Positions 3,300 to 20,076 of a stretch of DNA of 20,076 bases are shown one piece after another. The notes beneath the pieces are model-generated. The model was not told where the DNA came from and did not search any database. It saw only the letters and a list, made by a program, of their open reading frames with translations. Each line of letters starts with the position of its first letter. Within the stretch, counting starts at the first letter, position 1. Origin of the DNA: Prasinococcaceae sp. CCMP 1430 (lineage: Eukaryota > Plantae > Prasinodermophyta); NCBI GenBank assembly GCA_013416795.1, contig RQSC01001371.1, positions 47,746 to 67,821 of the forward strand, read 5' to 3'. The position numbers and the translations under genes are program-made.

Positions 3300-3639
3300 T
3301 TGCGTCGTCACCTCCGCGGCGCCGACATCTTACGCATGCTTGATTGCCACCATGATTTTTGGAGGTTAACTGATCACGAGCGCCGGCGCTAGACCGGCGC
3401 CGCCGCGCACTCTCCGCCCAGTAGCCTCATCACAGTAATGTAATCTCCAGATTTGGCCTGGACGCGACATTCTCTCTCCATAGCTCAGTTGGCCAGACTT
3501 GTCGGCAGACCCGTTTCGACATAGAGCGGATCCGGCAATCTTACAAAAGATTGCTCAGCTCACAGGATTGTAGTTTGATCTGAATTTCCTTAGGCCCTCG
3601 GTTCGAATTCAATTTCGAAAATCCGGGTGGGGAGAGTTG
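3300..3639 (+). repeat. 340-bp direct duplication, copy 1, containing tRNA-Tyr (partner 5697-6036)
   Basis: Constant offset of 2397. Identical except two substitutions (3324/5721, 3374/5771) and the 55-bp block 3375-3429. Confidence 0.95.
3474..3635 (+). tRNA. tRNA-Tyr(GUA) with four introns: 3494-3522 (20/21), 3530-3563 (27/28), 3574-3585 (37/38), 3608-3621 (59/60)
   Basis: Removing the 29+34+12+14 nt gives a 73-nt cloverleaf: CTCTCCA TA GCTC AGTTGGCA GAGC G GAGGA TTGTAGT TCCTT AGGCC CTCGG TTCGAAT CCGGG TGGGGAG A. All four stems pair (WC or G-U), anticodon GTA, C1-G72 and A73 as expected for eukaryotic Tyr identity. Confidence 0.9.
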
Positions 3640-4108
3640 TTTAAGTAAAAAACGACGTCTTAACTCTACGTAAGACTGGTTCTGCGCTCTTAAATACGGA
3701 GTTGAAAAGCACCACCGAGCATGTCACCACCCATTCATTTTCTTCCGCTGTATGCGCCCACCACCCTTTCCCCCTTTTTCTCCCCTTTTTCTCCTTTTTT
3801 GGCCAACCCACGCACATCCAGCGCACACCAGGTGGTGAAAGGAAAGGCGCTGGTGCGCCATCGCAGTGCAGCGCGTGCGCGCGCGCGCCCCCTCATGGCT
3901 CGTGCTGCGCGCCGCCCCCCCCCCGGGTGGGCGGCGGCGCTGAACTCGGCAGCCGAGGCGAGAGCGCGCCGCGGCGGCGCGCACCCTTACAAGTCACCCT
4001 CGCACTCCAATCCCCCCTCACCCATCGCAACACACCCCCCACGTCCCGCGCAGCCAGCCAGCCAGCAAGCGACGTACGCGGAGCGAGTTCACAGATTTGT
4101 TACGCGCG

Positions 4109-4139
<31 letters not shown>

Positions 4140-4214
4140 GGGGGGGGGGGGGGGGGGTTGCATCCGCCGCTCCTCCTCCGCTCCTCCATCCCACCCGTCC
4201 TCGGCAGGCCATCG

Positions 4215-4767
4215 TCACCGGACCTTCTTCTTCGCCTCGCCGTTCACCCGCCCGTTCGGCGCTCCCCTCCGCCCCTTCCCCTCCTTCCTCCTCCCCTTCT
4301 CCTTCCCCCCTTTGTCCTCGATGGTGAAGAACCGCACCCCCAGCGCGTCCGCAATCCTGCTGGCGGTGTTCCACGTGCGCCGCGCGTACATGGCCACCGA
4401 CAGCGCGCACATGGCCTCGTGCACGCGCGTGACCGCCACCGCCCCGTACCCCGCCGCGCCCAGCGCGGCGGGGGCGGCCGCGAACGCCGCCAGCATGAGC
4501 AGCGCCCAGTGCAGCGACGGGTACGGGATGTACCCCACGCGCGTGACCATCAGCCGGTTGAGCACGTCGCCGAAGGTCACGTGCGCCAGCACGTACAGCG
4601 CGATGAGCGAGTTGCGCGCGAGTCCCACCTCGCGCGCGGGCTCGACCGCGCCCCCGAACGCGCCCCCCATCGCGCGCCGCAGCGCCGCGCCCACCCCGCC
4701 CAGGCCGCCGCCGGACGGGGCGCGTGTGCCGCGCGCGGGCGCGCGCGTGCGGCGCCGGCGACGACGC
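4215..4767 (-). CDS. C-terminal exon of a choline/ethanolamine phosphotransferase (AAPT/CEPT family); orphan in this orientation
   Basis: Acceptor CAGCCAG|G at 4769/4768. Hydrophobic helices; VTFGDVLNRLMVTRV and RIADALGVRFFTI resemble the AAPT C-terminal motifs (FGFLVGRMILAHL; ITEALGIYCFRI). TGA at 4217-4215. Confidence 0.7.
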
Positions 4768-5235
4768 CTGGCTGTGATCGATCGACGGATCGATCGGAAA
4801 GTCGATCGATCCGTGATGATGATGGTGATGGGTCGGTGGATCGAGATCGATACGGAGTGGTGTGCAGCTCAACCGACCGGCCGCCCAATTTGCGCGGCGC
4901 GCGGCGGGCCGCTGTTGGTGGGTGGTCTGTCAGGCCTCGGTCAGATCCGGGATCTGCCGACCGAAGTGCCGAACCGAATGAACAAAAGTCACGCCGGCCT
5001 GCCTGGCATGGATGGACGTCCGTCCGTGCTTGCGCGCGCGCGCAGATTTTTCGCCGCGCAGCGGGAGGACGGGCGGCCGGCGCGGCGCCACACGCGCGGC
5101 GGGCGCGCGCGCCGGCCGAGGAGGTTTGGGCCGAGACCTCGGCCCGCACCGACGCGATCATTTGTCGCTGCTGCGACATTTCCATTTCCTCAAACTGCGT
5201 ATCAAATCGCAGGCGCCATGTCGTGTGGATGTTTT

Positions 5236-5298
5236 TTGATACGCGTGTTTTCGAAGGCTCCTCGCGGTGAGCTTTTCGGGCGGTTCGGAATTGATTGA
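5236..5298 (+). repeat. 63-bp hairpin element, copy 2
   Basis: Matches 2774-2836 at 57/63 positions. Confidence 0.8.
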
Positions 5299-5696: not shown

Positions 5697-6036
5697 TTGC
5701 GTCGTCACCTCCGCGGCGCCAACATCTTACGCATGCTTGATTGCCACCATGATTTTTGGAGGTTAACTGACGTGCTCGCGGCCGCGATCTGGCCGCGGCG
5801 GCGCGTGAGAGGCGGGTCATCGGAGTTCACAGTAATGTAATCTCCAGATTTGGCCTGGACGCGACATTCTCTCTCCATAGCTCAGTTGGCCAGACTTGTC
5901 GGCAGACCCGTTTCGACATAGAGCGGATCCGGCAATCTTACAAAAGATTGCTCAGCTCACAGGATTGTAGTTTGATCTGAATTTCCTTAGGCCCTCGGTT
6001 CGAATTCAATTTCGAAAATCCGGGTGGGGAGAGTTG
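5697..6036 (+). repeat. 340-bp direct duplication, copy 2, containing tRNA-Tyr
   Basis: Aligned by eye to 3300-3639 without gaps. Confidence 0.95.
5871..6032 (+). tRNA. tRNA-Tyr(GUA) with four introns, identical second copy (introns 5891-5919, 5927-5960, 5971-5982, 6005-6018)
   Basis: All 162 nt are identical to 3474-3635. Confidence 0.9.
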
Positions 6037-6043
6037 AAATTCA

Positions 6044-6049
6044 TTTTTT
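6044..6049 (+). terminator. Pol III oligo(dT) terminator of tRNA-Tyr copy 2
   Basis: T6 run starting 12 nt after A73. Confidence 0.65.
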
Positions 6050-6394
6050 GCTGCAGAATTGAGATGCATTCTGACCAAGACGCGAGAATTTACGTAATAG
6101 GTGCACCAGACTTGATCGGTATTTTACGGGATTTGAATTAAGTGCGTTCCAGAGAATGAGTCGAACCCACGCCCGGCTCTCCCGTGGGCAGGTCGCGCCC
6201 TTCTGTGCGCACCCCGCCGGAGTTAGGGTGCAGGATCTCGATGGCAGGGAGCACGGGTTTGCGGCAGGCGACGAACCCTCTTGCGGCGGGAACAGAAAAA
6301 TATACCCTTACTCGCGCCCGCCTGGCCGCACCCTCACTCGGCCGACCCCGCCGCCTCCCCCCCGGCCCAGCCCACACACACACAGCAGCCCGCT

Positions 6395-8027
6395 CTACGC
6401 CTCCTGCACGAAGGCCTTCTCGCCCTTCGCCTCGACGTACTCGGACTCCTTGGCGGCCTTCTTGGCGAACTTGGCCTCGAAGGCCTGCCGGTTGGCGACG
6501 ATGCGCGCGATGAGCGAGGTGAGCGTGAAGGGGCGCATCGCCCTCTCGGTCGCCGACAGCCCCTCGCCCTTGACCACCGCGCGCACGTTGATGTGCGCCG
6601 CCGAGTCCCCCCCCAGCCTGTGGCCGCTCATGTTTCTGTAGATCATCTTGTTGACCTGCTGGATGCCGTTGGCGACGTTGCCCGCGAAGGCGCCCAGGTT
6701 CTCCATGCTCTTGGACTTCGCGCGGCCCCGCGGGGGCCACCTCCGTCCCCTCCCCCCATCCTTGGCCTTGGCCTCCGCCTCCGCCCGCGCCGCGAGCGCG
6801 GTCGCCTCCGCCTCCGCCTCCCACGTGCTGCTCCGGTCCTGCAGCATGCCCATCTCGCGCGGCACGGCGTACGCCACGCGGTCCGACTCCTCGTCCAGCT
6901 CGTCCAGGTCGTCGCGCAGCACGAGGCTGATGTTGAAGGTGTTTATCAGGTCGGTGGTCATCACGCGCGGCGCGCCGATGACCACCTCGTCCACGTGGCA
7001 GCACGCGAGCACCGACAGCGCGCGCTCGTGCACGTTGAGGATGGGGAAGTGCGGCCCGCGCTCCGCCATCACCACCTCGTCGGGCCAGACGCCCACCAGC
7101 AGGAAGTCGCCGCGCGCCTTCGCCTCGCGGAGCAGCGTGATGTGGCCCGGGTGGAAGACGTCGAACGAGCCGTCCACGTAGACCACGCGCGAGTTGGGCC
7201 TGATCTTCTTGGACGAGGAGAACTGCACGATGCGGCGCGAGGTGGGCATGAAGCTCGACGCGCGCCCCTCCACCTTCTCGTCCTGCGTGAACTCGCGCTG
7301 CAGCGGCGACAGCTCGCCCATCTCGGCGTCGAGCGAGGCCTTCCGGAGGGACGGCTTGCGCTTGGTGCACATGAGCATGCGGCCCACGATGTCGGTGGTG
7401 GACACGCCCTCCGTGCGCTTGATCTCCTTGTACTTGCCGCGGCGCTTGGCGTTGGCGTAGGCGTCCTTGCCGTCGGCGGTGTAGCAGGGGTCGTCGCCGT
7501 GCACGATGTAGTCGATGCGGTGCTCGGTGAACAGGTGGTTCATCAGGTCGTCGGTGACGTCGTACGGCACGCCCATGATCACCTCGTCCACCCACTTGAC
7601 CGCCTCCACCGCCATGCGCCTCTCCCCCTCGTTGAACACCGGCGGGCCCTTGTGCACCTTGATCTCCTCGTCGGGCACCAGGCCGATGATGAGCTCGTCG
7701 CCGAGCGTCGCCGCCTGGCGCAGCGCGTTGGCGTGGCCGTAGTGCATCATGTCGAAGCAGCCGTCCATGTACACGCGGATCTTGTTTGTTTGTGTGGGTG
7801 GGCAGGTGTGTGGGTGGGCGAGAGGGCGATGAAGGGTGCGAGCGTGCAAGAGGAATCCGATCGAGCGGGCGCAGTCAGTTGGTTGGGCGAGGGCAACTCG
7901 TTGGGCGGGCGCAGCGGCGGGGGCGCGGCGGCTCCAGTGCGGCTCCGCGCGCCGATCGGCGCAGCGCCACCGCGAGCGCGGGCGCGAGCGCGGGCGGAGG
8001 CAGCACCACCACCGCCGCGAGCACCGC
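6395..8027 (-). CDS. PECT1: Ethanolamine-phosphate cytidylyltransferase, 5'-incomplete; main exon 7780-6395, putative upstream exon 8027-7971
   Basis: IRVYMDGCFDMMHYGHANALRQA, RTEGVSTTDIVGRML, and a second domain VYVDGSFDVFHPGH: two HxGH cytidylyltransferase domains. Acceptor after a CA-rich tract (AACAAG|ATC). The upstream exon AVLAAVVVLPPPALAPALA is phase-compatible but tentative. The first exon is lost at N8126. Confidence 0.9.
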
Positions 8028-9764: not shown

Positions 9765-9904
9765 GTGGGTGCGGTGCGACTGACTGTGTGTGTGTGCCCG
9801 CCCTCCCTCCCTCTGCGCGCGCGCGCGCCGAAGTCGCCGCCCGCCTCGGCCGACGGCGCGCTGACTGACGCGCGCGCGCCCGCCGCGCGCGCGCGCGCGC
9901 GCNC

Positions 9905-11899
9905 GACGATGCGTTGGATGATGGCAAGAAGGACAAAAGGCGGGGCGGCGGCGGGCGAGGCGGGGCGGGCGGCAGGGGGGGTGGCGGTGGTGGCGGTGGA
10001 GCGCCTCGGCCCGGTCGCACGCCGGAGGGAAGCGGGCGCCTACACGAGTATTCCGAGGGCGTGAAGGTTGCCGGTCATTTCTCGCAGTGGTCGGAGTTCA
10101 GCCAGATGCCCATGGCGACTGTGACCGCCGTGCTGGGGCGCGTGGGATCGCTCGAGGCGGAGACGGCGGCAATCTTGCACGAGTTCAACGTGCCGTCAAA
10201 TGAGTTTCCTCCGGAGGTCTTTGAGGACCTGCCGCAGGGCGAGGCGCTCACAAACGTTAACCTGAGTGCGCCCGGCGGCGCACTCGACGCGCCGCGCCGT
10301 GACCTGCGCGAGTGGCGCATCACTTCGATCGACCCGCCCACCGCGCGCGACCTCGACGACGCGTTGTCCATCCGCGAGCTGCCCAATGGCCGCACCGAGG
10401 TAGGTGTGCACATCGCCGACGTCACGCACTATGTTGTTCCCGGCACCTCGCTCGATGCGGAGGCCGCTGAGCGCTCGACCTCCACGTACCTCATCGACGG
10501 CGTCATTCCGATGCTGCCGCGCCCGCTCTGCGAGCATCTGTGCTCGCTGCAGCCGGGCGTGGACCGCCTGGCGTTCTCGATAACGTGGGAGTTCGACAAG
10601 CAGGGCAACATTCACAACGAGTGGGCCGGCCGCTCCATCATACGCTCGTGCGGCCAGCTCGCGTACCAGAATGCCTACAACCTCATGCAGGGGCTGCCGC
10701 CGGACGAGGGCGACATCAAGCTGCCGGAGCTTCACAACGGGGTCACGTGGAACGACGTGGCCCACGACGTCAAAGCGCTGTGGCGGATCGGCTCGCAGCT
10801 GCGCAGGAAGCGCTTCGCCGACGGCGCGCTCGCCCTCCATCGGGTGAAGTTCGGCTTCAAGCTTGACGAGACGGGCCAGCCCACGGCGGCACACCACTAC
10901 AAAACCAACGAGGCGAACCAGCTGGTGGAGGAGTTCATGCTGCTCGCAAATAGGTCCGTGGCGCGCATTATCGCGGAGGAGTTCCCCGACCGCGCGCTTC
11001 TGCGCCGCCACCCACCGCCCGACAAGAAGAAGCTCGGTGATCTGGCGTCCTTCGCGGCCAAGCACGGCCTTAGCGTCGATACGCGTACCTCAAAGTCGCT
11101 GCACGAGAGCTTGCAGAAGGCGCGGCAGACGTACCGTGACCAGGGGCTTGCGGACGTGCTCGTGCACTTCGCCACCAAGCCCATGCAGCTCGCGATGTAC
11201 TTCAGCTGTGGCATGGCCATCGAGGCGGACTGGCCACACTACGCGCTCGCCATGGAGCGCTACACGCACTTCACCAGTCCCATCCGGCGCTACGCGGATG
11301 TGGTTGTGCACAGGATGCTAGCCGCAGCACTCGACATTCGCGCGGGTGCTGTGGAGGACCACGAGGCCGCCATCGCTAAGTGGCAGCTCTATGAGTGCGA
11401 GGACGCCGACCGGCAAGCCTCGCGCTGCAACGAGCGCAAGGAGGCTGCCAAAATGGCGCAAGAGGCCTCCGAGCGCCTCTATCTGTGCCTGCTCTTGAAT
11501 GCCGGCAAGGAAGGCGACCCGCGCGTTGCGAGGGTCGGCGAGGGTGGCGTCAACCGCTACACCGACGGGCTGATCGTCTCTGTTGGCTCGAAGTTCATCT
11601 CCGTCTTCCTGCCGCACTACTCCATCGAGAGCAGGTGTTACCTGGATGACATCCACCCCGACCTGCAAGCTGCGCACGACCCTGACAAGTTCACGGTTAC
11701 GCTCACCGGAGGGCCGGCAGGCGGCGGGCGAACACTGCGCATTCTCGACCACTGTACCGTGGAGCTTCACGCGGTCTTTCCCAATCGCGGTCCGTGCCAG
11801 ATTCGCACCACGCTTCTCGTTGGGGAGGGGGAAGAGCCGCCCGACACGCGCCACCACTTGCCCGCGGTGGCAGCCGCGCACGCATCGGAGGACGTGTGA
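9905..11899 (+). CDS. DIS3L2-like RNB-family 3'-5' exoribonuclease, 5'-incomplete
   Basis: RRDLR...SIDPPTARDLDD, VGVHIADV, LCSLQPGVDRLAFS, VEEFMLLAN, HYALA..YTHFTSPIRRYADVVVHR. No introns seen. Confidence 0.85.
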   Translation, partial: DDALDDGKKDKRRGGGGRGGAGGRGGGGGGGGAPRPGRTPEGSGRLHEYSEGVKVAGHFSQWSEFSQMPMATVTAVLGRVGSLEAETAAILHEFNVPSNEFPPEVFEDLPQGEALTNVNLSAPGGALDAPRRDLREWRITSIDPPTARDLDDALSIRELPNGRTEVGVHIADVTHYVVPGTSLDAEAAERSTSTYLIDGVIPMLPRPLCEHLCSLQPGVDRLAFSITWEFDKQGNIHNEWAGRSIIRSCGQLAYQNAYNLMQGLPPDEGDIKLPELHNGVTWNDVAHDVKALWRIGSQLRRKRFADGALALHRVKFGFKLDETGQPTAAHHYKTNEANQLVEEFMLLANRSVARIIAEEFPDRALLRRHPPPDKKKLGDLASFAAKHGLSVDTRTSKSLHESLQKARQTYRDQGLADVLVHFATKPMQLAMYFSCGMAIEADWPHYALAMERYTHFTSPIRRYADVVVHRMLAAALDIRAGAVEDHEAAIAKWQLYECEDADRQASRCNERKEAAKMAQEASERLYLCLLLNAGKEGDPRVARVGEGGVNRYTDGLIVSVGSKFISVFLPHYSIESRCYLDDIHPDLQAAHDPDKFTVTLTGGPAGGGRTLRILDHCTVELHAVFPNRGPCQIRTTLLVGEGEEPPDTRHHLPAVAAAHASEDV

Positions 11900-12053
11900 A
11901 TAGGCCACCTCTCAAGCGCGCAACGACCAGGACGGCCACCAGTGGTGTTTTAATGACTTCTCACTTTGCTAATACAGTACGTGTGGTCGCGTTTGGTCTC
12001 CTGGGGTGCGCGCACCCAGGTTGCTCTCATCTCACAGTGCGCAGCGCTACAGC

Positions 12054-13169
12054 TCACTCGAAGTACTCGTTGGTGAAGATCGCCTCCGCGCGCACTTGAT
12101 CTCTGGGGATGCGCTCGCCCACGTCGCCAGCTCGAAGCCCGTCCAGTGTCGCTGACTGGCCCTTGACCGGCTGCCGCGAGTTCGCGTACGTCGTGAGCAA
12201 GCCCTCTTTGTCCAGCCAGTCCAGGTACGCATTCCAGCGCTCGGGGGTCTGGCGCCCCCATTTGCCGTCGCCATCTAGGTACGCCGGCCCGAGCTTGCGC
12301 TGTGAGCGCACGCACATCTCGAGATCGAGATTGTCGTCGCCGCAGAGCTCCTTGGCGCCTTCCACGAGCTCGCGCGCTGCCTCCTCTGGATGCGCGGCCG
12401 CCCATTCGTAGCCCTCTGCAGTGGCCGCAAGGAAGGCGCGCACGTCGTCCGCGCGTGCAGTGAGCGTCTCGGGCGCCGCCACGAGGCAAGGCGCGTATGC
12501 GTACGGTATTCCGTAGTCTTCAAGCATGAAGTAGTTCAGCTTCTGATCGTCCCCACTCATCTCGGCCTGCACGCCCTCCCAGCACGTGAATACCCACGTG
12601 GCGTCGGCCTCGCCCTTGAGCACAGTGTTCCACAGGCCAAGCATGGGCTCCACACACTCCTCGTAGTCGCCTGTGCCGCCGTCGGCCTGGATGAGGCGCT
12701 GGATGATGCGTCCCTCGAAACGGGCGGCATAACTGGCGTAGCGTTTCCCGTCCAGCTCGCGCGGCCGGGTGATGTCCTTACGCGCGGCGACGGCCGAAGT
12801 GTTACGCTGGCACAGAGCGGCGACGGTAGTGAGCGTGCGCTCGCGCCGGCCGCTCGCGCCGCATGCAGGCAAGTTCCAGCCGACCACTCCCTCCGGCGAG
12901 TTCATGGCAAAGGTCACCTCTCCGGTGGATGCCAGGCCACACGGCGTGGCGTAGCCACCGCCGTCGCCGCCGCTCACGTAGCTGCCCTTGTAGCGCGCGT
13001 CTGCCGCGGAGAGCAGCTCCACGGTGAGCCCCCTCTTCGCGTACATCCCACGCCTCGCGGCGACGAAGAACCCGGTGTGGTTCGTGTTGGGCGTCCAGTC
13101 GAGCGCGACGACCACCGGCGCGCCGCCCCCTCCATCGCCGCCGCCGTTGCCGCCGCCCGCCGCGGCCAT
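12054..13169 (-). CDS. NMT1/THI5-family (ThiY-like) thiamine-precursor-binding protein
   Basis: VALDWTPNTNHTGFFVA...G, GKRYASYAARFE and DYGIPYAYAPCLVA are typical of the NMT1/ThiY periplasmic-binding fold. Intronless, 371 aa. Confidence 0.8.
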   Translation of the reverse strand: MAAAGGGNGGGDGGGGAPVVVALDWTPNTNHTGFFVAARRGMYAKRGLTVELLSAADARYKGSYVSGGDGGGYATPCGLASTGEVTFAMNSPEGVVGWNLPACGASGRRERTLTTVAALCQRNTSAVAARKDITRPRELDGKRYASYAARFEGRIIQRLIQADGGTGDYEECVEPMLGLWNTVLKGEADATWVFTCWEGVQAEMSGDDQKLNYFMLEDYGIPYAYAPCLVAAPETLTARADDVRAFLAATAEGYEWAAAHPEEAARELVEGAKELCGDDNLDLEMCVRSQRKLGPAYLDGDGKWGRQTPERWNAYLDWLDKEGLLTTYANSRQPVKGQSATLDGLRAGDVGERIPRDQVRAEAIFTNEYFE

Positions 13170-13564
13170 GATGGCACGCCCCGCACTCCGCGCCGCCGCC
13201 GCACGCGCGAGATGTGCCGCCCTCGGGGCCGCCGGCGTTGTGCGGGCGCGCCCTAGCTAGCCCTCAGACGAGTGTAACTGACGCAGTGGCCCGATCCGCT
13301 GTTAGAAAACCGCATGTGATTTGATTTGATGGGGAAAGTCTTGCAGAACTGTGGAGCACAGACGACCCAAAATCCGCAGGACGCCCTCAGCAGCATCTCG
13401 CCGCGTGGCCGCCGGCGCCAGGCGGCACCAGCAGCGACGGGTGCGTGGCCGCAGCGGCGCGGCAGGCAGCGCGTGGGAAGGCGTGGCAAGCAGTATGTAC
13501 GTATGTAACACTCTCGGAGGACGAGAAAAATGCCTAGACTAGCTAGAGCTCCGGCCGCACGCGC

Positions 13565-13922
13565 TTATGCCGCCGCCACGCGCTTCAGCGTGGCGAAATT
13601 GTCCGCGATGATCTTCGTGGACGGCGAGATGCGGTAGCCAGCACCGTTCTCCTTGGCCCACGCCTGCAGGATTGGACGCACCGTGTGGTAGTTGTACCTA
13701 GGCATCGTGGGGAACAGGTGGTGCTCGAGCTGCGTGTCCATGCCGCCCCACAGCCACGTTTCGATCGGACCGAACACAGTGTCCGCGTCACGCGTGCTGC
13801 GAAACTGCCCTTCGACAAAGTCCGGCTCATCGCCCTCCAGCATGATCTCCTCAGACTGGTGCGTCGCGGACACCAGCGCACCCACCAAGAAGCCCCCAAG
13901 GAAGATTGAGCCGATGGCCCCC
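13565..13922 (-). CDS. C-terminal fragment of a front-end-type membrane fatty acid desaturase
   Basis: WLWGGMDTQLEHHLFPTMPRY carries the Q-substituted third histidine box (QxxHH). TAA at 13567-13565. The 5' part is absent and abuts a DENN intron tail. Confidence 0.75.
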
Positions 13923-17001: not shown

Positions 17002-17227
17002 GCGACCGCGCCGGCAGGTGGGCGCGCCCCTCCCGCCGTGCGCCTGATAATGAGTGGATTGCGAACGCAGCGGCAGACGCGGCTGCGCGGCGCGGCGCCG
17101 CGCGCGGAGGCGTCGCCAGAGAGGAGGCGCCGCGCGCACCTTCTTCGCGGCCCCTCTTCCCTCCCACGCGCTCCGCCCACACACGCGTGTACACACGCAC
17201 ACACATACCTTTCTTACTGTTCTTCCT

Positions 17228-19697
17228 CTACTCTGCGCCACCGCACGCCCGCGCCGCCCGCAGCGCCTGCTCGGTGGCGCCGATTTTGCCGAGCGTCTCG
17301 GCCACATCCGGGTGGTCGTCGCCCAGCGCGGCGCGCTGGATGCGCAGCGCCTCCTCGAGCGGCTCGAGCGCCTCGGCGTGGCGACCCTGGATGAAGTACA
17401 CCATGCCCATGTCGCCGAGCGTCTCCGCCACATCCGGGTGGACGTCGCCAAGCTTGGCGCGCTGGATGCGCAGCGCCTCCTCGTACGCCTCGAGCGCCTC
17501 GGCGTAGCGGCCCTGGCTGTCGTACACACTGCCAATGTTGCCGAGCGTCGTCGCCACATCCAGGTGGTCGTCGCCAAGCTTGGCGCGCCTGATGCGCAGC
17601 GCCTCCTCGTACGCCTCGAGCGCCTTGGCGTAGCGTTCCTGCTTGAAGTACACCATGCCCTTGTGGTTGAGCGTCTTCGCCACATCCGGGTGATCGTCGC
17701 CCAGCTTGGCGCGCCTGATGCGCAGCGCCTCCTCGTGCGCCTCGAGCGCCTCGGCGTGGCGACCCTGGCATTGGTACACGCTGCCCATGTTGTCGAGCGT
17801 CGTCGCCACATCCGGGTGGTCGTCGCCCAGCTTGGCGCGCTGGATGCGCAGCGCCTCCTCGTGCGCCTCGAGCGCCTCGGCGTGGCGTCCCTGGCTGTTG
17901 TACACCACGCCCATGTTGTCGCGTGTCCGCGCCACATCCGGGTGGTCGTCGCCCAGCGCGGTGCGCTGGATGCGCAGCGCCTCTTCGAGCGCCTCGAGCG
18001 CCTCGGCGTAGCGACCCTGGTGGCTGCCGTACACGTTGCCCATGAGGCCGAGCGTCTCCGCCACATCCGGGTGGTCGTCGCCCAGCTTGGCGCGCCTGAT
18101 GCGCAGCGCCTCCTCGAGCGGCTCGAGCGCCTCGGCGTGGCGTCCCTGGCATTGGTACGCGGCGCCAACGTAGGTGAGCGTCATCGCCACATCCGGGTGG
18201 TCGTCGCCCAGCTTGGCGCGCCTGATGCGCAGCGCCTCCTCGTACGTCTCGAGCGCCTCGGCGTGGCGACCCTGGCATTGGTACGTGACGCCAACAGAGG
18301 TGAGCGTCGTCGCCTCATCCAGGTGGTCATCGCCCAGCTTGGCGCGCTGGATGCGCAGTGCTTCCTCGTACGTCTCGAGCGCCTCGGCGTGGCGACCCTG
18401 GCATTGGTACGCGCTGCCCATGTCGCCGAGCGTCGTCGCCACATCCAGGTGGTCGTCGCCAAGCTTGGCGCGCCTGATGCGCAGCGCCTCCTCGTACGCC
18501 TCGAGCGCCTTGGCGTACCGATCCTGCATGAAGTACACCATGCCCTTGTGGTTGAGCGTCCGCGCCACATCCGGGTGGTCGTTGCCCAGCTTGGCGCGCC
18601 TGATGCGCAGCGCCTCCTCGAGCGGCTCAAGCGCCTCGGCGTGGCGACCCTGGCATTGGTACGCGCTGCCAATGTTGCCGAGCGTCGTCGCCACATCCAG
18701 GTGGTCATCGCCCAGCTTGACGCGCCTGATGCGCAGCGCCTCCTCGTGCGCCTCGAGCGCCTCGGCGTGGCGTCCCTGGCTTTGGTACACGTTGCCCTTG
18801 TAGTTGAGCGTCGTCGCCACATCCGGGTGGTCGTCGCCCAGCTTGGCGCGCACTACGGGCAGCGCCTCTTCGAGCGCCTCGAGCGCCTCGGCGTAGCGGC
18901 CCTGGTTGGTATACACGTGGCCCATCATGGCGCGCGTCCGCGCCACATCCGGGTGGTCGTCGCCCAGCTTGGCGCGCCTGATGCGCAGCGCCTCCTCGTA
19001 CGCCTCGAGCGCCTCGGCGTAGCGGCCCTGGCTGCCGTACACGTTGCCCATGTCGTTGCGCGTCTTCGCCACATCCGGGTGGTCGTCGCCCAGCTTGGCG
19101 CGCCTGATGCGCAGCGCCTCCTCGTACGTCTCGAGCGCCTCAGCGTAGCGTCCCTGGTTGAAGTACACAATGCCCATGAGGCCGAGCGTCGCCGCGACAT
19201 CCGGGTGGTCGTCGCCAAGCTTGGCGCGCTCGATGCGCAGTGCTTCCTCGTACGTCTCGAGCGCCTTGGCGTAGCGTTCCTGCTTGAAGTACACCATGCC
19301 CTTGTGGTTGAGCGTCTCCGCCACATCCGGGTGGTCGTCGCCCAGCTTGGCGCGCCTGATGCGCAGCGCCTCCTCGTGCGCCTCCAGCGCCTCGGCGTGG
19401 CGACCCTGGCATTGGTACGAGCGTCGTCGCCACATCCAGGTGGTCATCGCCCAGCTTGACGCGCCTGATGCGCAGCGCCTCCTCGTGCGCCTCCAGCGCC
19501 TCGGCGTGGCGACCCTGGCATTGGTACGCGGCGCCAACGCAGGTGAGCATCATCGCCACATTCGGGTGGTCGTTGCCCAGCTTGGCGCGCATGAGGCGCA
19601 GCGCCTCCTTGTACGCCTCGAGCGCCTCAGCGTAACGCCTCTGGCTAAGATGCTCGTCGCCCGTGCGCACCGCCGCCAGCGCCGCCGCGCCGCTCAT
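17228..19697 (-). CDS. Kinesin-light-chain-type TPR protein, 19 tandem 42-aa (126-bp) units, frameshifted by a 17-bp deletion at 19418/19419
   Basis: Consensus xYxxQGRYAEALEAYEEALRIRRAKLGDDHPDVAxTLxxxG. ATG at 19697 (MSGAAALAAVR). The first two units are in a different frame from the remaining 17. Confidence 0.85.
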
Positions 19698-20076
19698 CTC
19701 GCGCCCCGCCCCTCCGAGTCCACGCGGGCGGCGCGCACAGAGTGCCACCGCCTTCCTCGCCACTCTCGCTCGCTCGCTGCAGCCCCCCCCCCCCCCCCAA
19801 GGGGGACCATCCGCCGCCGCGACGGAAAAAAGACCGCCCGCTCGCCCGGAAGCGCCGCCGCGCCGCGGTTCGTGCCGTCCGTGGTTCAGGGTTTATAATT
19901 CAAACCGAAATTGCGCGAAACAGGGCCGTTGGGACCCCCGGTTCTCGCGCCGGCGCGCCCCCGAGAACGCGAATCCGGAATCGGTTTCGGAAGGGCGCGA
20001 ACGAACAAACAGCAGCGCGCGCTCGCGCGCGTGCGCGCAGCGCCCGCACGCGCCCCGCAGCGCCCGCAGCGGTCGG

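Follow-up and report, generated by a model that had tools for sequence, protein, structure and literature searches.

A duplicated tRNA-Tyr(GUA) gene with four predicted introns, three of them at BHB-like sites away from position 37/38, in a green alga of the Prasinoderma type

The stretch of DNA analysed here (the window, 20,076 nt) carries at positions 3474-3635, and again in a duplicate, what is best read as a functional nuclear tRNA-Tyr(GUA) gene of the Pol III type, which is split by four introns and for which position-independent splicing at bulge-helix-bulge (BHB) motifs is predicted. This reading is considered probable, and its basis is the colinear order of the exons, the cloverleaf formed by them, a 4-bp helix at the BHB register and an anticodon-intron pair. 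The novelty lies in the lineage and in the intron number; the kind of gene, i.e., the tRNA gene disrupted by BHB-mediated introns, is already known.

According to the textbook view, a protein ruler ties eukaryotic tRNA splicing to position 37/38, and exceptions to this rule are documented in red algae and nucleomorphs. If the gene described here works, position-independent tRNA splicing extends to the green lineage and the largest known number of introns per tRNA goes up from three to four. Likewise, a working gene would provide a natural substrate whose GAGC exon strand must change partners between two splicing steps, and as a consequence of this partner switch both the order of splicing and the refolding of the RNA are directly testable.

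Host

The host had been described as an apparent green alga, which is borne out by the green-lineage relatives of both neighbouring ORFs. The best named relative of the phosphoethanolamine cytidylyltransferase ORF (6395-7849, reverse strand) is Prasinoderma singulare with 77% identity, the remaining matches coming from green algae and plants, and the next relatives of a zeaxanthin-epoxidase-like ORF are Chloropicon and other prasinophytes. The GC content of the window ranges from 0.58 to 0.73 per kb, and 69.8% GC was reported for the genome of P. coloniale (PMC7455551). Judged from these sequences, the host is almost certainly a Prasinoderma, i.e., a member of the third phylum of green plants, and it appears to be Prasinoderma coloniale itself or a very close relative.

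Architecture of the gene and its spliced product

The gene spans 162 nt on the forward strand and is reduced to 73 nt once four inserts of 29, 34, 12 and 14 nt are excised, whereby exons of 20, 7, 10, 22 and 14 nt remain, which are ordered colinearly from 1 to 5:

3474-3493 (+): exon 1, 20 nt; tRNA positions 1-20, comprising the acceptor 5' strand, U8 and A9, the D-stem 5' strand and the D loop through C20, with an intact A box TAGCTCAGTTGG
3494-3522 (+): intron 1, 29 nt; in the D loop at 20/21
3523-3529 (+): exon 2, 7 nt; A21, the D-stem 3' strand GAGC (22-25), G26 and G27
3530-3563 (+): intron 2, 34 nt; at 27/28
3564-3573 (+): exon 3, 10 nt; positions 28-37, including the anticodon G34 U35 A36
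3574-3585 (+): intron 3, 12 nt; at the canonical site 37/38
3586-3607 (+): exon 4, 22 nt; positions 38-59, comprising the anticodon-stem 3' strand, the variable loop, the T-stem 5' strand and the T loop through A59
3608-3621 (+): intron 4, 14 nt; in the T loop at 59/60
3622-3635 (+): exon 5, 14 nt; positions 60-73, comprising the end of the T loop, the T-stem 3' strand, the acceptor 3' strand and the discriminator A73

With slashes marking the joins, the predicted exon-exon junctions read ...GTTGGC/AGAGCGG/AGGATTGTAG/TTCCTTAGG... and ...GGTTCGAA/TCCGGG.... ARAGORN called the joined 73-mer as tRNA-Tyr(gta) with stems of 7 bp (acceptor), 4 bp (D), 5 bp (anticodon) and 5 bp (T), whereby the join submitted carried U20 and the product of the BHB register carries C20, both being otherwise the same. 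The minimum free energy (MFE) fold of the spliced 73 nt is a perfect cloverleaf of -25.1 kcal/mol, hence call and fold agree with the original prediction that the 162 nt yield a complete 73-nt Tyr(GUA) cloverleaf after four excisions. Within the spliced product, the universal bases U8, A14, G18 G19, U33, G53 U54 U55 C56, A58 and C61 are present, as are the C1-G72 pair and the A73 discriminator, which were read directly from the sequence. C1-G72 together with A73 constitutes the identity set of the archaeal/eukaryotic TyrRS. The gene hence combines the 7/4/5/5 cloverleaf, C1-G72/A73 and a short 37/38 intron with the pair 32:-3, as is characteristic of a eukaryotic nuclear tRNA-Tyr(GUA). Exons, introns and window have GC contents of 58%, 42% and 68%, respectively.

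When the raw DNA was searched, ARAGORN returned 0 tRNA genes for the whole window, and Rfam had no match at the gathering score within the window, nor at E<=10 on 3300-3800 or around the second gene copy; the gene was thus missed by these standard finders, as had been expected. Since such programs are blank here, it is likely that too few tRNA genes have been counted in this genome, and probably in its relatives too. A circularly permuted tRNA gene was ruled out, as the exons are colinear and the 3' half does not lie upstream of the 5' half. Group I/II self-splicing introns, which measure hundreds of nt and contain a ribozyme core, were ruled out too, given that the inserts measure just 12-34 nt and that Rfam gave no match even at E<=10.

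Splice motifs

The rule tested for each insert was that exon positions n-5 to n-2 pair with intron positions L-5 to L-2, so that two bases are left before each cut; this register of the BHB layout is also that of the eukaryotic anticodon-intron pair. The pairings GTTG/CGAC, GAGC/GCTC and TTCG/CGAA, which had been proposed from inspection of the sequence, were all recovered in this register: the central helix H is GUUG/CGAC for intron 1 at 20/21 (4/4 pairs, one of them G.U), GAGC/GCUC for intron 2 at 27/28 (4/4, all Watson-Crick) and UUCG/CGAA for intron 4 at 59/60 (4/4). For intron 3, the 12-nt canonical intron, 3/4 pairs were found in register, among them the expected pair U32:A(-3), which is the anticodon-intron pair; its central helix is weak (U:A, U.G, G.U), and shifting its junction by +1 or +2 nt leaves the product unchanged.

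The weight of these complementarities was estimated by shuffling each intron 200,000 times and scoring the shuffled sequences for a 4/4 helix at the fixed register. The resulting probabilities are 0.066 for intron 1, 0.0098 for intron 2 and 0.0087 for intron 4, corresponding to a joint shuffle probability of 5.6e-6 for introns 1, 2 and 4, which stays below about 1e-4 when alternative junction registers are allowed for. That five exon pieces give a Tyr cloverleaf and at the same time show BHB complementarity is therefore far beyond chance.

Beyond the central helix the motifs are unequal. Intron 1 forms an hBHBh'-like motif, in which H is made up of G15-G18 and CGAC and both bulges comprise 3 nt (the 3' bulge being A, U plus A21). 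The D stem serves as h, A14 separating it from H as an unpaired base, and h' is the 4-bp helix AGAC/GUUU; the motif also appears when the raw 162 nt are folded to the MFE, whereby the computed structure gives the central helix 5 bp. The motif of intron 4 is of the hBH type, with the 5-bp T stem serving as h in exact register and a 3' bulge of A, A plus U60; here, H (UUCG, positions 54-57, with CGAA) is extendable to 6 bp, which places the 5' cut at a helix/loop boundary, and h' is absent. Intron 2 possesses a relaxed motif, consisting of H (GAGC, positions 22-25, with GCUC) and a 3-nt 3' bulge of A, C plus A28; a 9-bp hairpin within the intron closes the 6x2 internal loop in which the 5' site is found, and a cis h helix is absent.

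As a consequence, the original prediction of BHB geometry at all three ectopic sites stands with respect to the helix register, which is 4/4 throughout, and has to be tempered with respect to the motifs as a whole, as intron 2 departs widely from a strict BHB. Near-textbook motifs are confined to introns 1 and 4, whereby that of intron 4 (hBH) is still relaxed, as is that of intron 2. The gene thus shows the features of a BHB-disrupted tRNA gene, namely introns away from 37/38 (at 20/21, 27/28 and 59/60) and BHB or relaxed BHL motifs, with intron 2 falling under the relaxed definition only.

Precursor folding and proposed order of splicing

In the MFE structure of the unspliced 162 nt (-50.8 kcal/mol), the acceptor stem is formed, and the motifs of introns 1 and 4 are present together with the D stem and the T stem, respectively. 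The probability of the central helix is 0.93-0.97 for intron 4 in all splicing states; for intron 2 it rises from 0.19 in the full precursor to 0.43 with intron 1 removed, and the structure in which the intron 2 helix is enforced lies 1.4 kcal/mol above the MFE. Though contained in the MFE structure, the intron 1 motif has an ensemble probability of about 0.1, the 5' region being heterogeneous. The central helix of intron 2 and the D stem are mutually exclusive, as both need the GAGC strand of the exon; that this strand is claimed by both had been noticed before and is seen in the register as well as in the folds. Since one strand is common to both helices, an order of splicing can reasonably be inferred.

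In the mechanism suggested, a TSEN-type endonuclease would cleave both strands two nucleotides past the 4-bp helix, and the exons would then be sealed by an RNA ligase. Intron 4 in the T loop (hBH on the T stem) and intron 1 in the D loop (hBHBh' on the D stem) would be removed first, as both motifs already form in the MFE structure of the unspliced RNA. Next would come intron 2, whose helix requires the GAGC strand of the D stem and roughly doubles in probability after the excision of intron 1. The canonical 37/38 intron would be excised last, by the ordinary eukaryotic measuring mechanism acting on the restored tRNA body. Given that three cuts fall away from 37/38, the endonuclease is assumed to be position-independent, i.e., it would accept BHB-like motifs at any position. 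The 20,076 nt of the window hold no gene for a TSEN subunit.

Second copy and transcription signals

The whole four-intron gene is present a second time within the window, a fact the original prediction did not mention. The copies and their flanking signals are:

5871-6032 (+): copy 2 of the whole four-intron gene, base-for-base identical to copy 1; coordinates equal those of copy 1 + 2397
3433-3454 (+): AT-rich upstream block CAGTAATGTAATCTCCAGATTT, at -41 to -20; identical repeat at 5830-5851
6044-6049 (+): T6 run, 12 nt past copy 2

The identity extends over a block of 210 nt (3430-3639 = 5827-6036, 100%), which takes in 44 nt upstream of the gene and the AT-rich stretch; ahead of it, a further block of 74 nt is 99% identical between the copies. 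The AT-rich block may possibly represent a TATA-like upstream element of Pol III, a role which is proposed by analogy to the literature on plant and algal tRNA genes (PMC3978253). The T6 run past copy 2 is probably a Pol III terminator; downstream of copy 1 only TTT (3640-3642) and no T-run terminator is found. As to the internal promoter, the B box had been described as interrupted at C61, and indeed it reads GGTTCGAATTC at the DNA level, matching at 10/11 positions with the first deviation at position 61, which results from intron 4 starting with TTC.

Related sequences

A contig from an independent ENA study (ERZ28548065 NODE_9786, 10.1 kb; referred to as L017) was found to be syntenic with the window and to hold two further copies of the gene, each with all four inserts at identical sites, hence the inserts are no assembly artefact. 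In both L017 copies, introns 1 and 2 are unchanged at their 3' ends (...CGACAT and ...GCTCAC), which contain the intron strands of the central helices, and T6 and T7 runs are present downstream of the copies. Between L017 and the window, coding DNA is about 100% identical and intergenic DNA differs by 5-12%, the same contrast being seen with Tara Oceans contigs. The L017 tRNA copies diverge by about 8-18%, i.e., at or above the level of the flanking intergenic DNA, with 6/73 and 8/73 differences in the exons and 6/56 and 10/56 in the intron bodies; these differences are spread evenly, so the exons are no better conserved than the introns. Part of the non-coding differences may be errors, as coverage of L017 is low (k-mer coverage 0.6). 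In one copy, the C1-G72 pair is lost and A7:A66 and A31:C39 mismatches occur, and its spliced form is still called as tRNA-Tyr by ARAGORN; the other copy has an altered anticodon and a deletion in the D stem. At least the L017 copies thus look unconstrained, and the locus may hold decaying copies. Usable covariation was not obtained from the L017 copies.

A tRNA-Tyr is absent from two further related sequences, namely L013 (a relative of 60% identity and 0.48 GC) and L015 (a transcript contig of Prasinoderma singulare). When JGI metagenome contigs were scanned for the pattern of a Tyr gene carrying inserts in the D loop and at 27/28, no orthologue was found; two pattern matches were rejected, being chance hits in bacterial tRNA arrays. 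The Tara Oceans contigs, which were retrieved via the THI5/NMT1, ECT and ZEP-like neighbours and match parts of the window with 97-99% identity, end short of the tRNA genes at window positions 6136 and 2383, where the assemblies probably break at the repeat. A reversal without complementing was considered as the cause of the mismatch between Tara contigs and window, and no match to such a sequence was found.

The window itself is not free of irregularities. Scaffold joins of a single N occur at 2390, 8126, 9903 and 14250, a block of 55 nt directly upstream of copy 1 is complemented and not reversed, and a C28G16 run is present; the order of the blocks around the tRNA genes is doubtful in view of the scaffold Ns and of the disagreement with the Tara and L017 contigs. 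The ORF at 3721-5298 is probably not a real gene, as its frame crosses the C28G16 run. A B-box-like sequence, GGGTTCGACTC at 6167-6158 on the reverse strand, gave no tRNA in an exhaustive search by single excision combined with the canonical-intron search of ARAGORN, and Rfam was blank there at E<=10.

Alternative explanations

The divergence of the L017 copies raises the question of whether the genes described here are pseudogenes, recently duplicated dead copies or decaying members of a family, in which the inserts are historical, complete splicing having ceased or never existed, and Tyr decoding is provided by another gene. This would be in line with the changes disrupting stems and anticodon in L017, with L017 exons being no more conserved than introns, with a tRNA divergence reaching or exceeding that of intergenic DNA where coding DNA is about 100% identical, with the missing terminator of copy 1 and with a region that is structurally unstable or mis-scaffolded. 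Yet both copies in the window are flawless with respect to cloverleaf, universal bases, C1-G72/A73 and A box, and BHB-register complementarity is found at all three ectopic inserts (about 6e-6 by shuffling), which neutral decay would not keep. The same four insert sites recur in all four known copies, identifying this layout as the standing design of the family, and the low coverage of L017 implies that its non-coding differences are perhaps partly errors. Decay of the window copies is hence regarded as rather unlikely. That the inserts are an artefact of assembly or scaffolding, or the tRNA match a product of chance, is hardly credible: the single-N joins, the complemented block and the C28G16 run would speak for it, however they all lie outside the 210-nt identical gene block, the independent L017 assembly has the gene with all four inserts, and a complete Tyr cloverleaf from five pieces with BHB complementarity is far more than chance provides.

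A different objection concerns the processing of a gene that is otherwise functional. The D-loop junction may lie one nucleotide upstream, giving U20 in place of C20, or intron 2 may be removed via a different fold or by a non-BHB factor. Indeed, a junction after G19 also yields a 73-nt cloverleaf accepted by ARAGORN, intron 2 lacks canonical bulges at its 5' side, and enforcing the intron 2 helix brings about an alternative 9-bp helix of exon 1 with the anticodon region. However, only the C20 junction places a 4-bp helix exactly two nucleotides before both cuts of intron 1, none being found in the alternative register, and cleavage of relaxed motifs similar to that of intron 2 is on record for C. 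merolae and for Crenarchaeota (PMC3728597, PMC4033280), which leaves such processing as improbable. A functional four-intron gene, spliced at BHB-like motifs in the register given above, is thus the reading adopted in the following.

Comparison with known systems

The original prediction held that reported multi-intron tRNAs carry at most three introns, and the literature searched agrees: three is the maximum for tRNAs of Thermoproteales (PMC4033280), nine genes with two and three genes with three introns were reported for C. merolae (PMC3728597), and no paper describing a four-intron tRNA was found. For green algae, a review on permuted tRNAs states that there are 'almost no' atypical tRNA introns (PMC3978253). 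Prasinoderma is absent from a 2026 review of tRNA genes of photosynthetic organisms (PMC13578239), and the genome paper of P. coloniale with its supplements (PMC7455551) contains nothing on nuclear tRNA genes.

The closest parallels are found with red algae. As in C. merolae (PMC3728597; PMC9602550), the gene is nuclear and colinear, the D arm as well as the anticodon and T loops carry short introns, motifs of the strict hBHBh' type occur next to relaxed hBH ones, and an AT-rich block lies upstream. Unlike in C. merolae, four introns are present as compared to the published maximum of three, the host is green and not red, and one intron lies at 27/28, where its helix competes with the D stem; moreover, splicing is a prediction in the case described here. 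For C. merolae, the canonical intron was found to be excised after the ectopic ones (PMC3728597), which agrees with the last place proposed above for the 37/38 intron. In Chondrus crispus, introns at 20/21 in the D loop and at 58/59 in the T loop were reported, whereby its tRNA-Tyr possesses the 20/21 and the canonical intron, as validated by RT-PCR (PlantRNA 2.0, doi 10.1101/2021.12.21.473619). The gene described here hence shares with it the isoacceptor, the 20/21 insertion point and the canonical 37/38 intron, and the 58/59 introns of Chondrus adjoin the 59/60 site found here; Chondrus genes carry at most two introns at fixed D-loop and T-loop sites, whereas the present gene adds 27/28 and 59/60.

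It is conceivable that Prasinoderma runs its whole nuclear tRNA set on position-independent BHB splicing of the archaeal and red-algal style, that its genes carry as many as four introns, more than is known from any other organism, and that the 20/21 and T-loop sites together with a broad-specificity endonuclease were inherited from the ancestor of the Archaeplastida and not gained separately; this is put forward as a tentative suggestion.

With the Thermoproteales, as far as the work of Sugahara et al. 2008 is summarised in PMC4033280, the gene shares non-canonical sites, including those in the D arm and the T loop, and BHB/BHL motifs that are independent of position. According to the same summary, the genes of Thermoproteales are archaeal, are cut by EndA of the (alpha-beta)2 or epsilon2 type and have a maximum of three introns; in contrast to these, the present gene bears Tyr identity elements of the eukaryotic type, and its canonical intron of 12 nt shows the anticodon-intron pair. 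The permuted tRNA genes of the prasinophytes Ostreococcus and Micromonas (Maruyama et al. 2010, as outlined in PMC3978253) likewise stem from picoalgae of the green lineage and involve a BHB-like motif in tRNA gene expression. As outlined in that review, the permuted genes of Ostreococcus, Micromonas and the Bigelowiella nucleomorph are circularly permuted with a junction at 37/38, whereas the gene described here is colinear and its ectopic junctions lie away from 37/38.

Scaffold structure of the window

The window is a scaffold mosaic, whose structure is marked by the following positions:

2390, 8126, 9903 and 14250: one single N at each position
4706-4714, 9894-9904 and 13922: further positions of mosaic structure

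For ten contigs from the Tara Oceans metagenomes, the match to the window is confined to 9904-13922, and beyond the matched part all ten run into an intact RNB/Dis3-like gene (1016 aa), the initial 390 residues of which are missing from the window. In L017, an independent ENA contig syntenic with the window, position 4714 was found to be fused directly to 9894, and here a CDP-alcohol phosphotransferase gene is intact across the join, whereas in the window the same gene is split, with its parts residing on opposite strands. L017 likewise carries two tRNA-Tyr copies, which are inverted and approximately 5.2 kb apart. The order and orientation of the window blocks at the listed positions have to be considered doubtful.

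Immediately upstream of both tRNA-Tyr copies, a 55-nt block is placed between two directly repeated blocks, whereby the version at copy 1 (3375-3429) is an exact base-by-base complement (55/55) of the paralogue at 5772-5826, read in the same direction rather than reversed. As L017 matches the copy-2 version, the copy-1 version was identified as the deviant one; the complemented block is probably an artefact of assembly or polishing.

Divergence from natural populations

Comparison of the window with the natural-population contigs L003-L012, L014 and L017 revealed 99.3-100% identity for coding DNA, third codon positions included, while neighbouring intergenic DNA is 3-12% different and possesses numerous small indels, a contrast which, on the sequences compared, is unusually steep.

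Intron 2 and a B-box-like motif

The 3' part of intron 2 (3530-3563), the insert at 27/28 of tRNA-Tyr copy 1, holds GCTCAGCTCA, i.e., two GCTCA in tandem, GCTCA being the motif of the D-stem 5' strand in exon 1 (3483-3488). Intron 2 may have originated when the D arm was duplicated locally; alternatively, its resemblance to that arm may be a product of selection.

Between the phosphoethanolamine cytidylyltransferase gene and tRNA-Tyr copy 2 two elements were identified, the second approximately 130 nt downstream of the first:

~6305-6294, minus strand: TATA-like GGGTATATTTTT
6158-6167, minus strand: perfect B-box-like GGGTTCGACTC

For the 6158-6167 region, single excision combined with ARAGORN yielded no tRNA and Rfam at E<=10 gave no match; the sequence flanking the B-box-like motif differs among strains. 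The site could represent a further gene for a small RNA, either permuted or broken into many pieces, or it could have no significance.

Long ORFs and repeats

The long ORF at 3721-5298, which is without Pfam match and has no recorded gene call, contains approximately 28 C followed by approximately 16 G (4102-4153), a run likely to be a sequence artefact or low-complexity spacer rather than coding. Another long ORF (17054-19459), with weak Pfam matches to C5orf34_C and DUF1937, is the location of a tandem array (17150-19720) in which a 126-nt unit recurs approximately 19 times, with 82-87% identity in the core, and which, if translated, is predicted to yield a 42-residue protein repeat.
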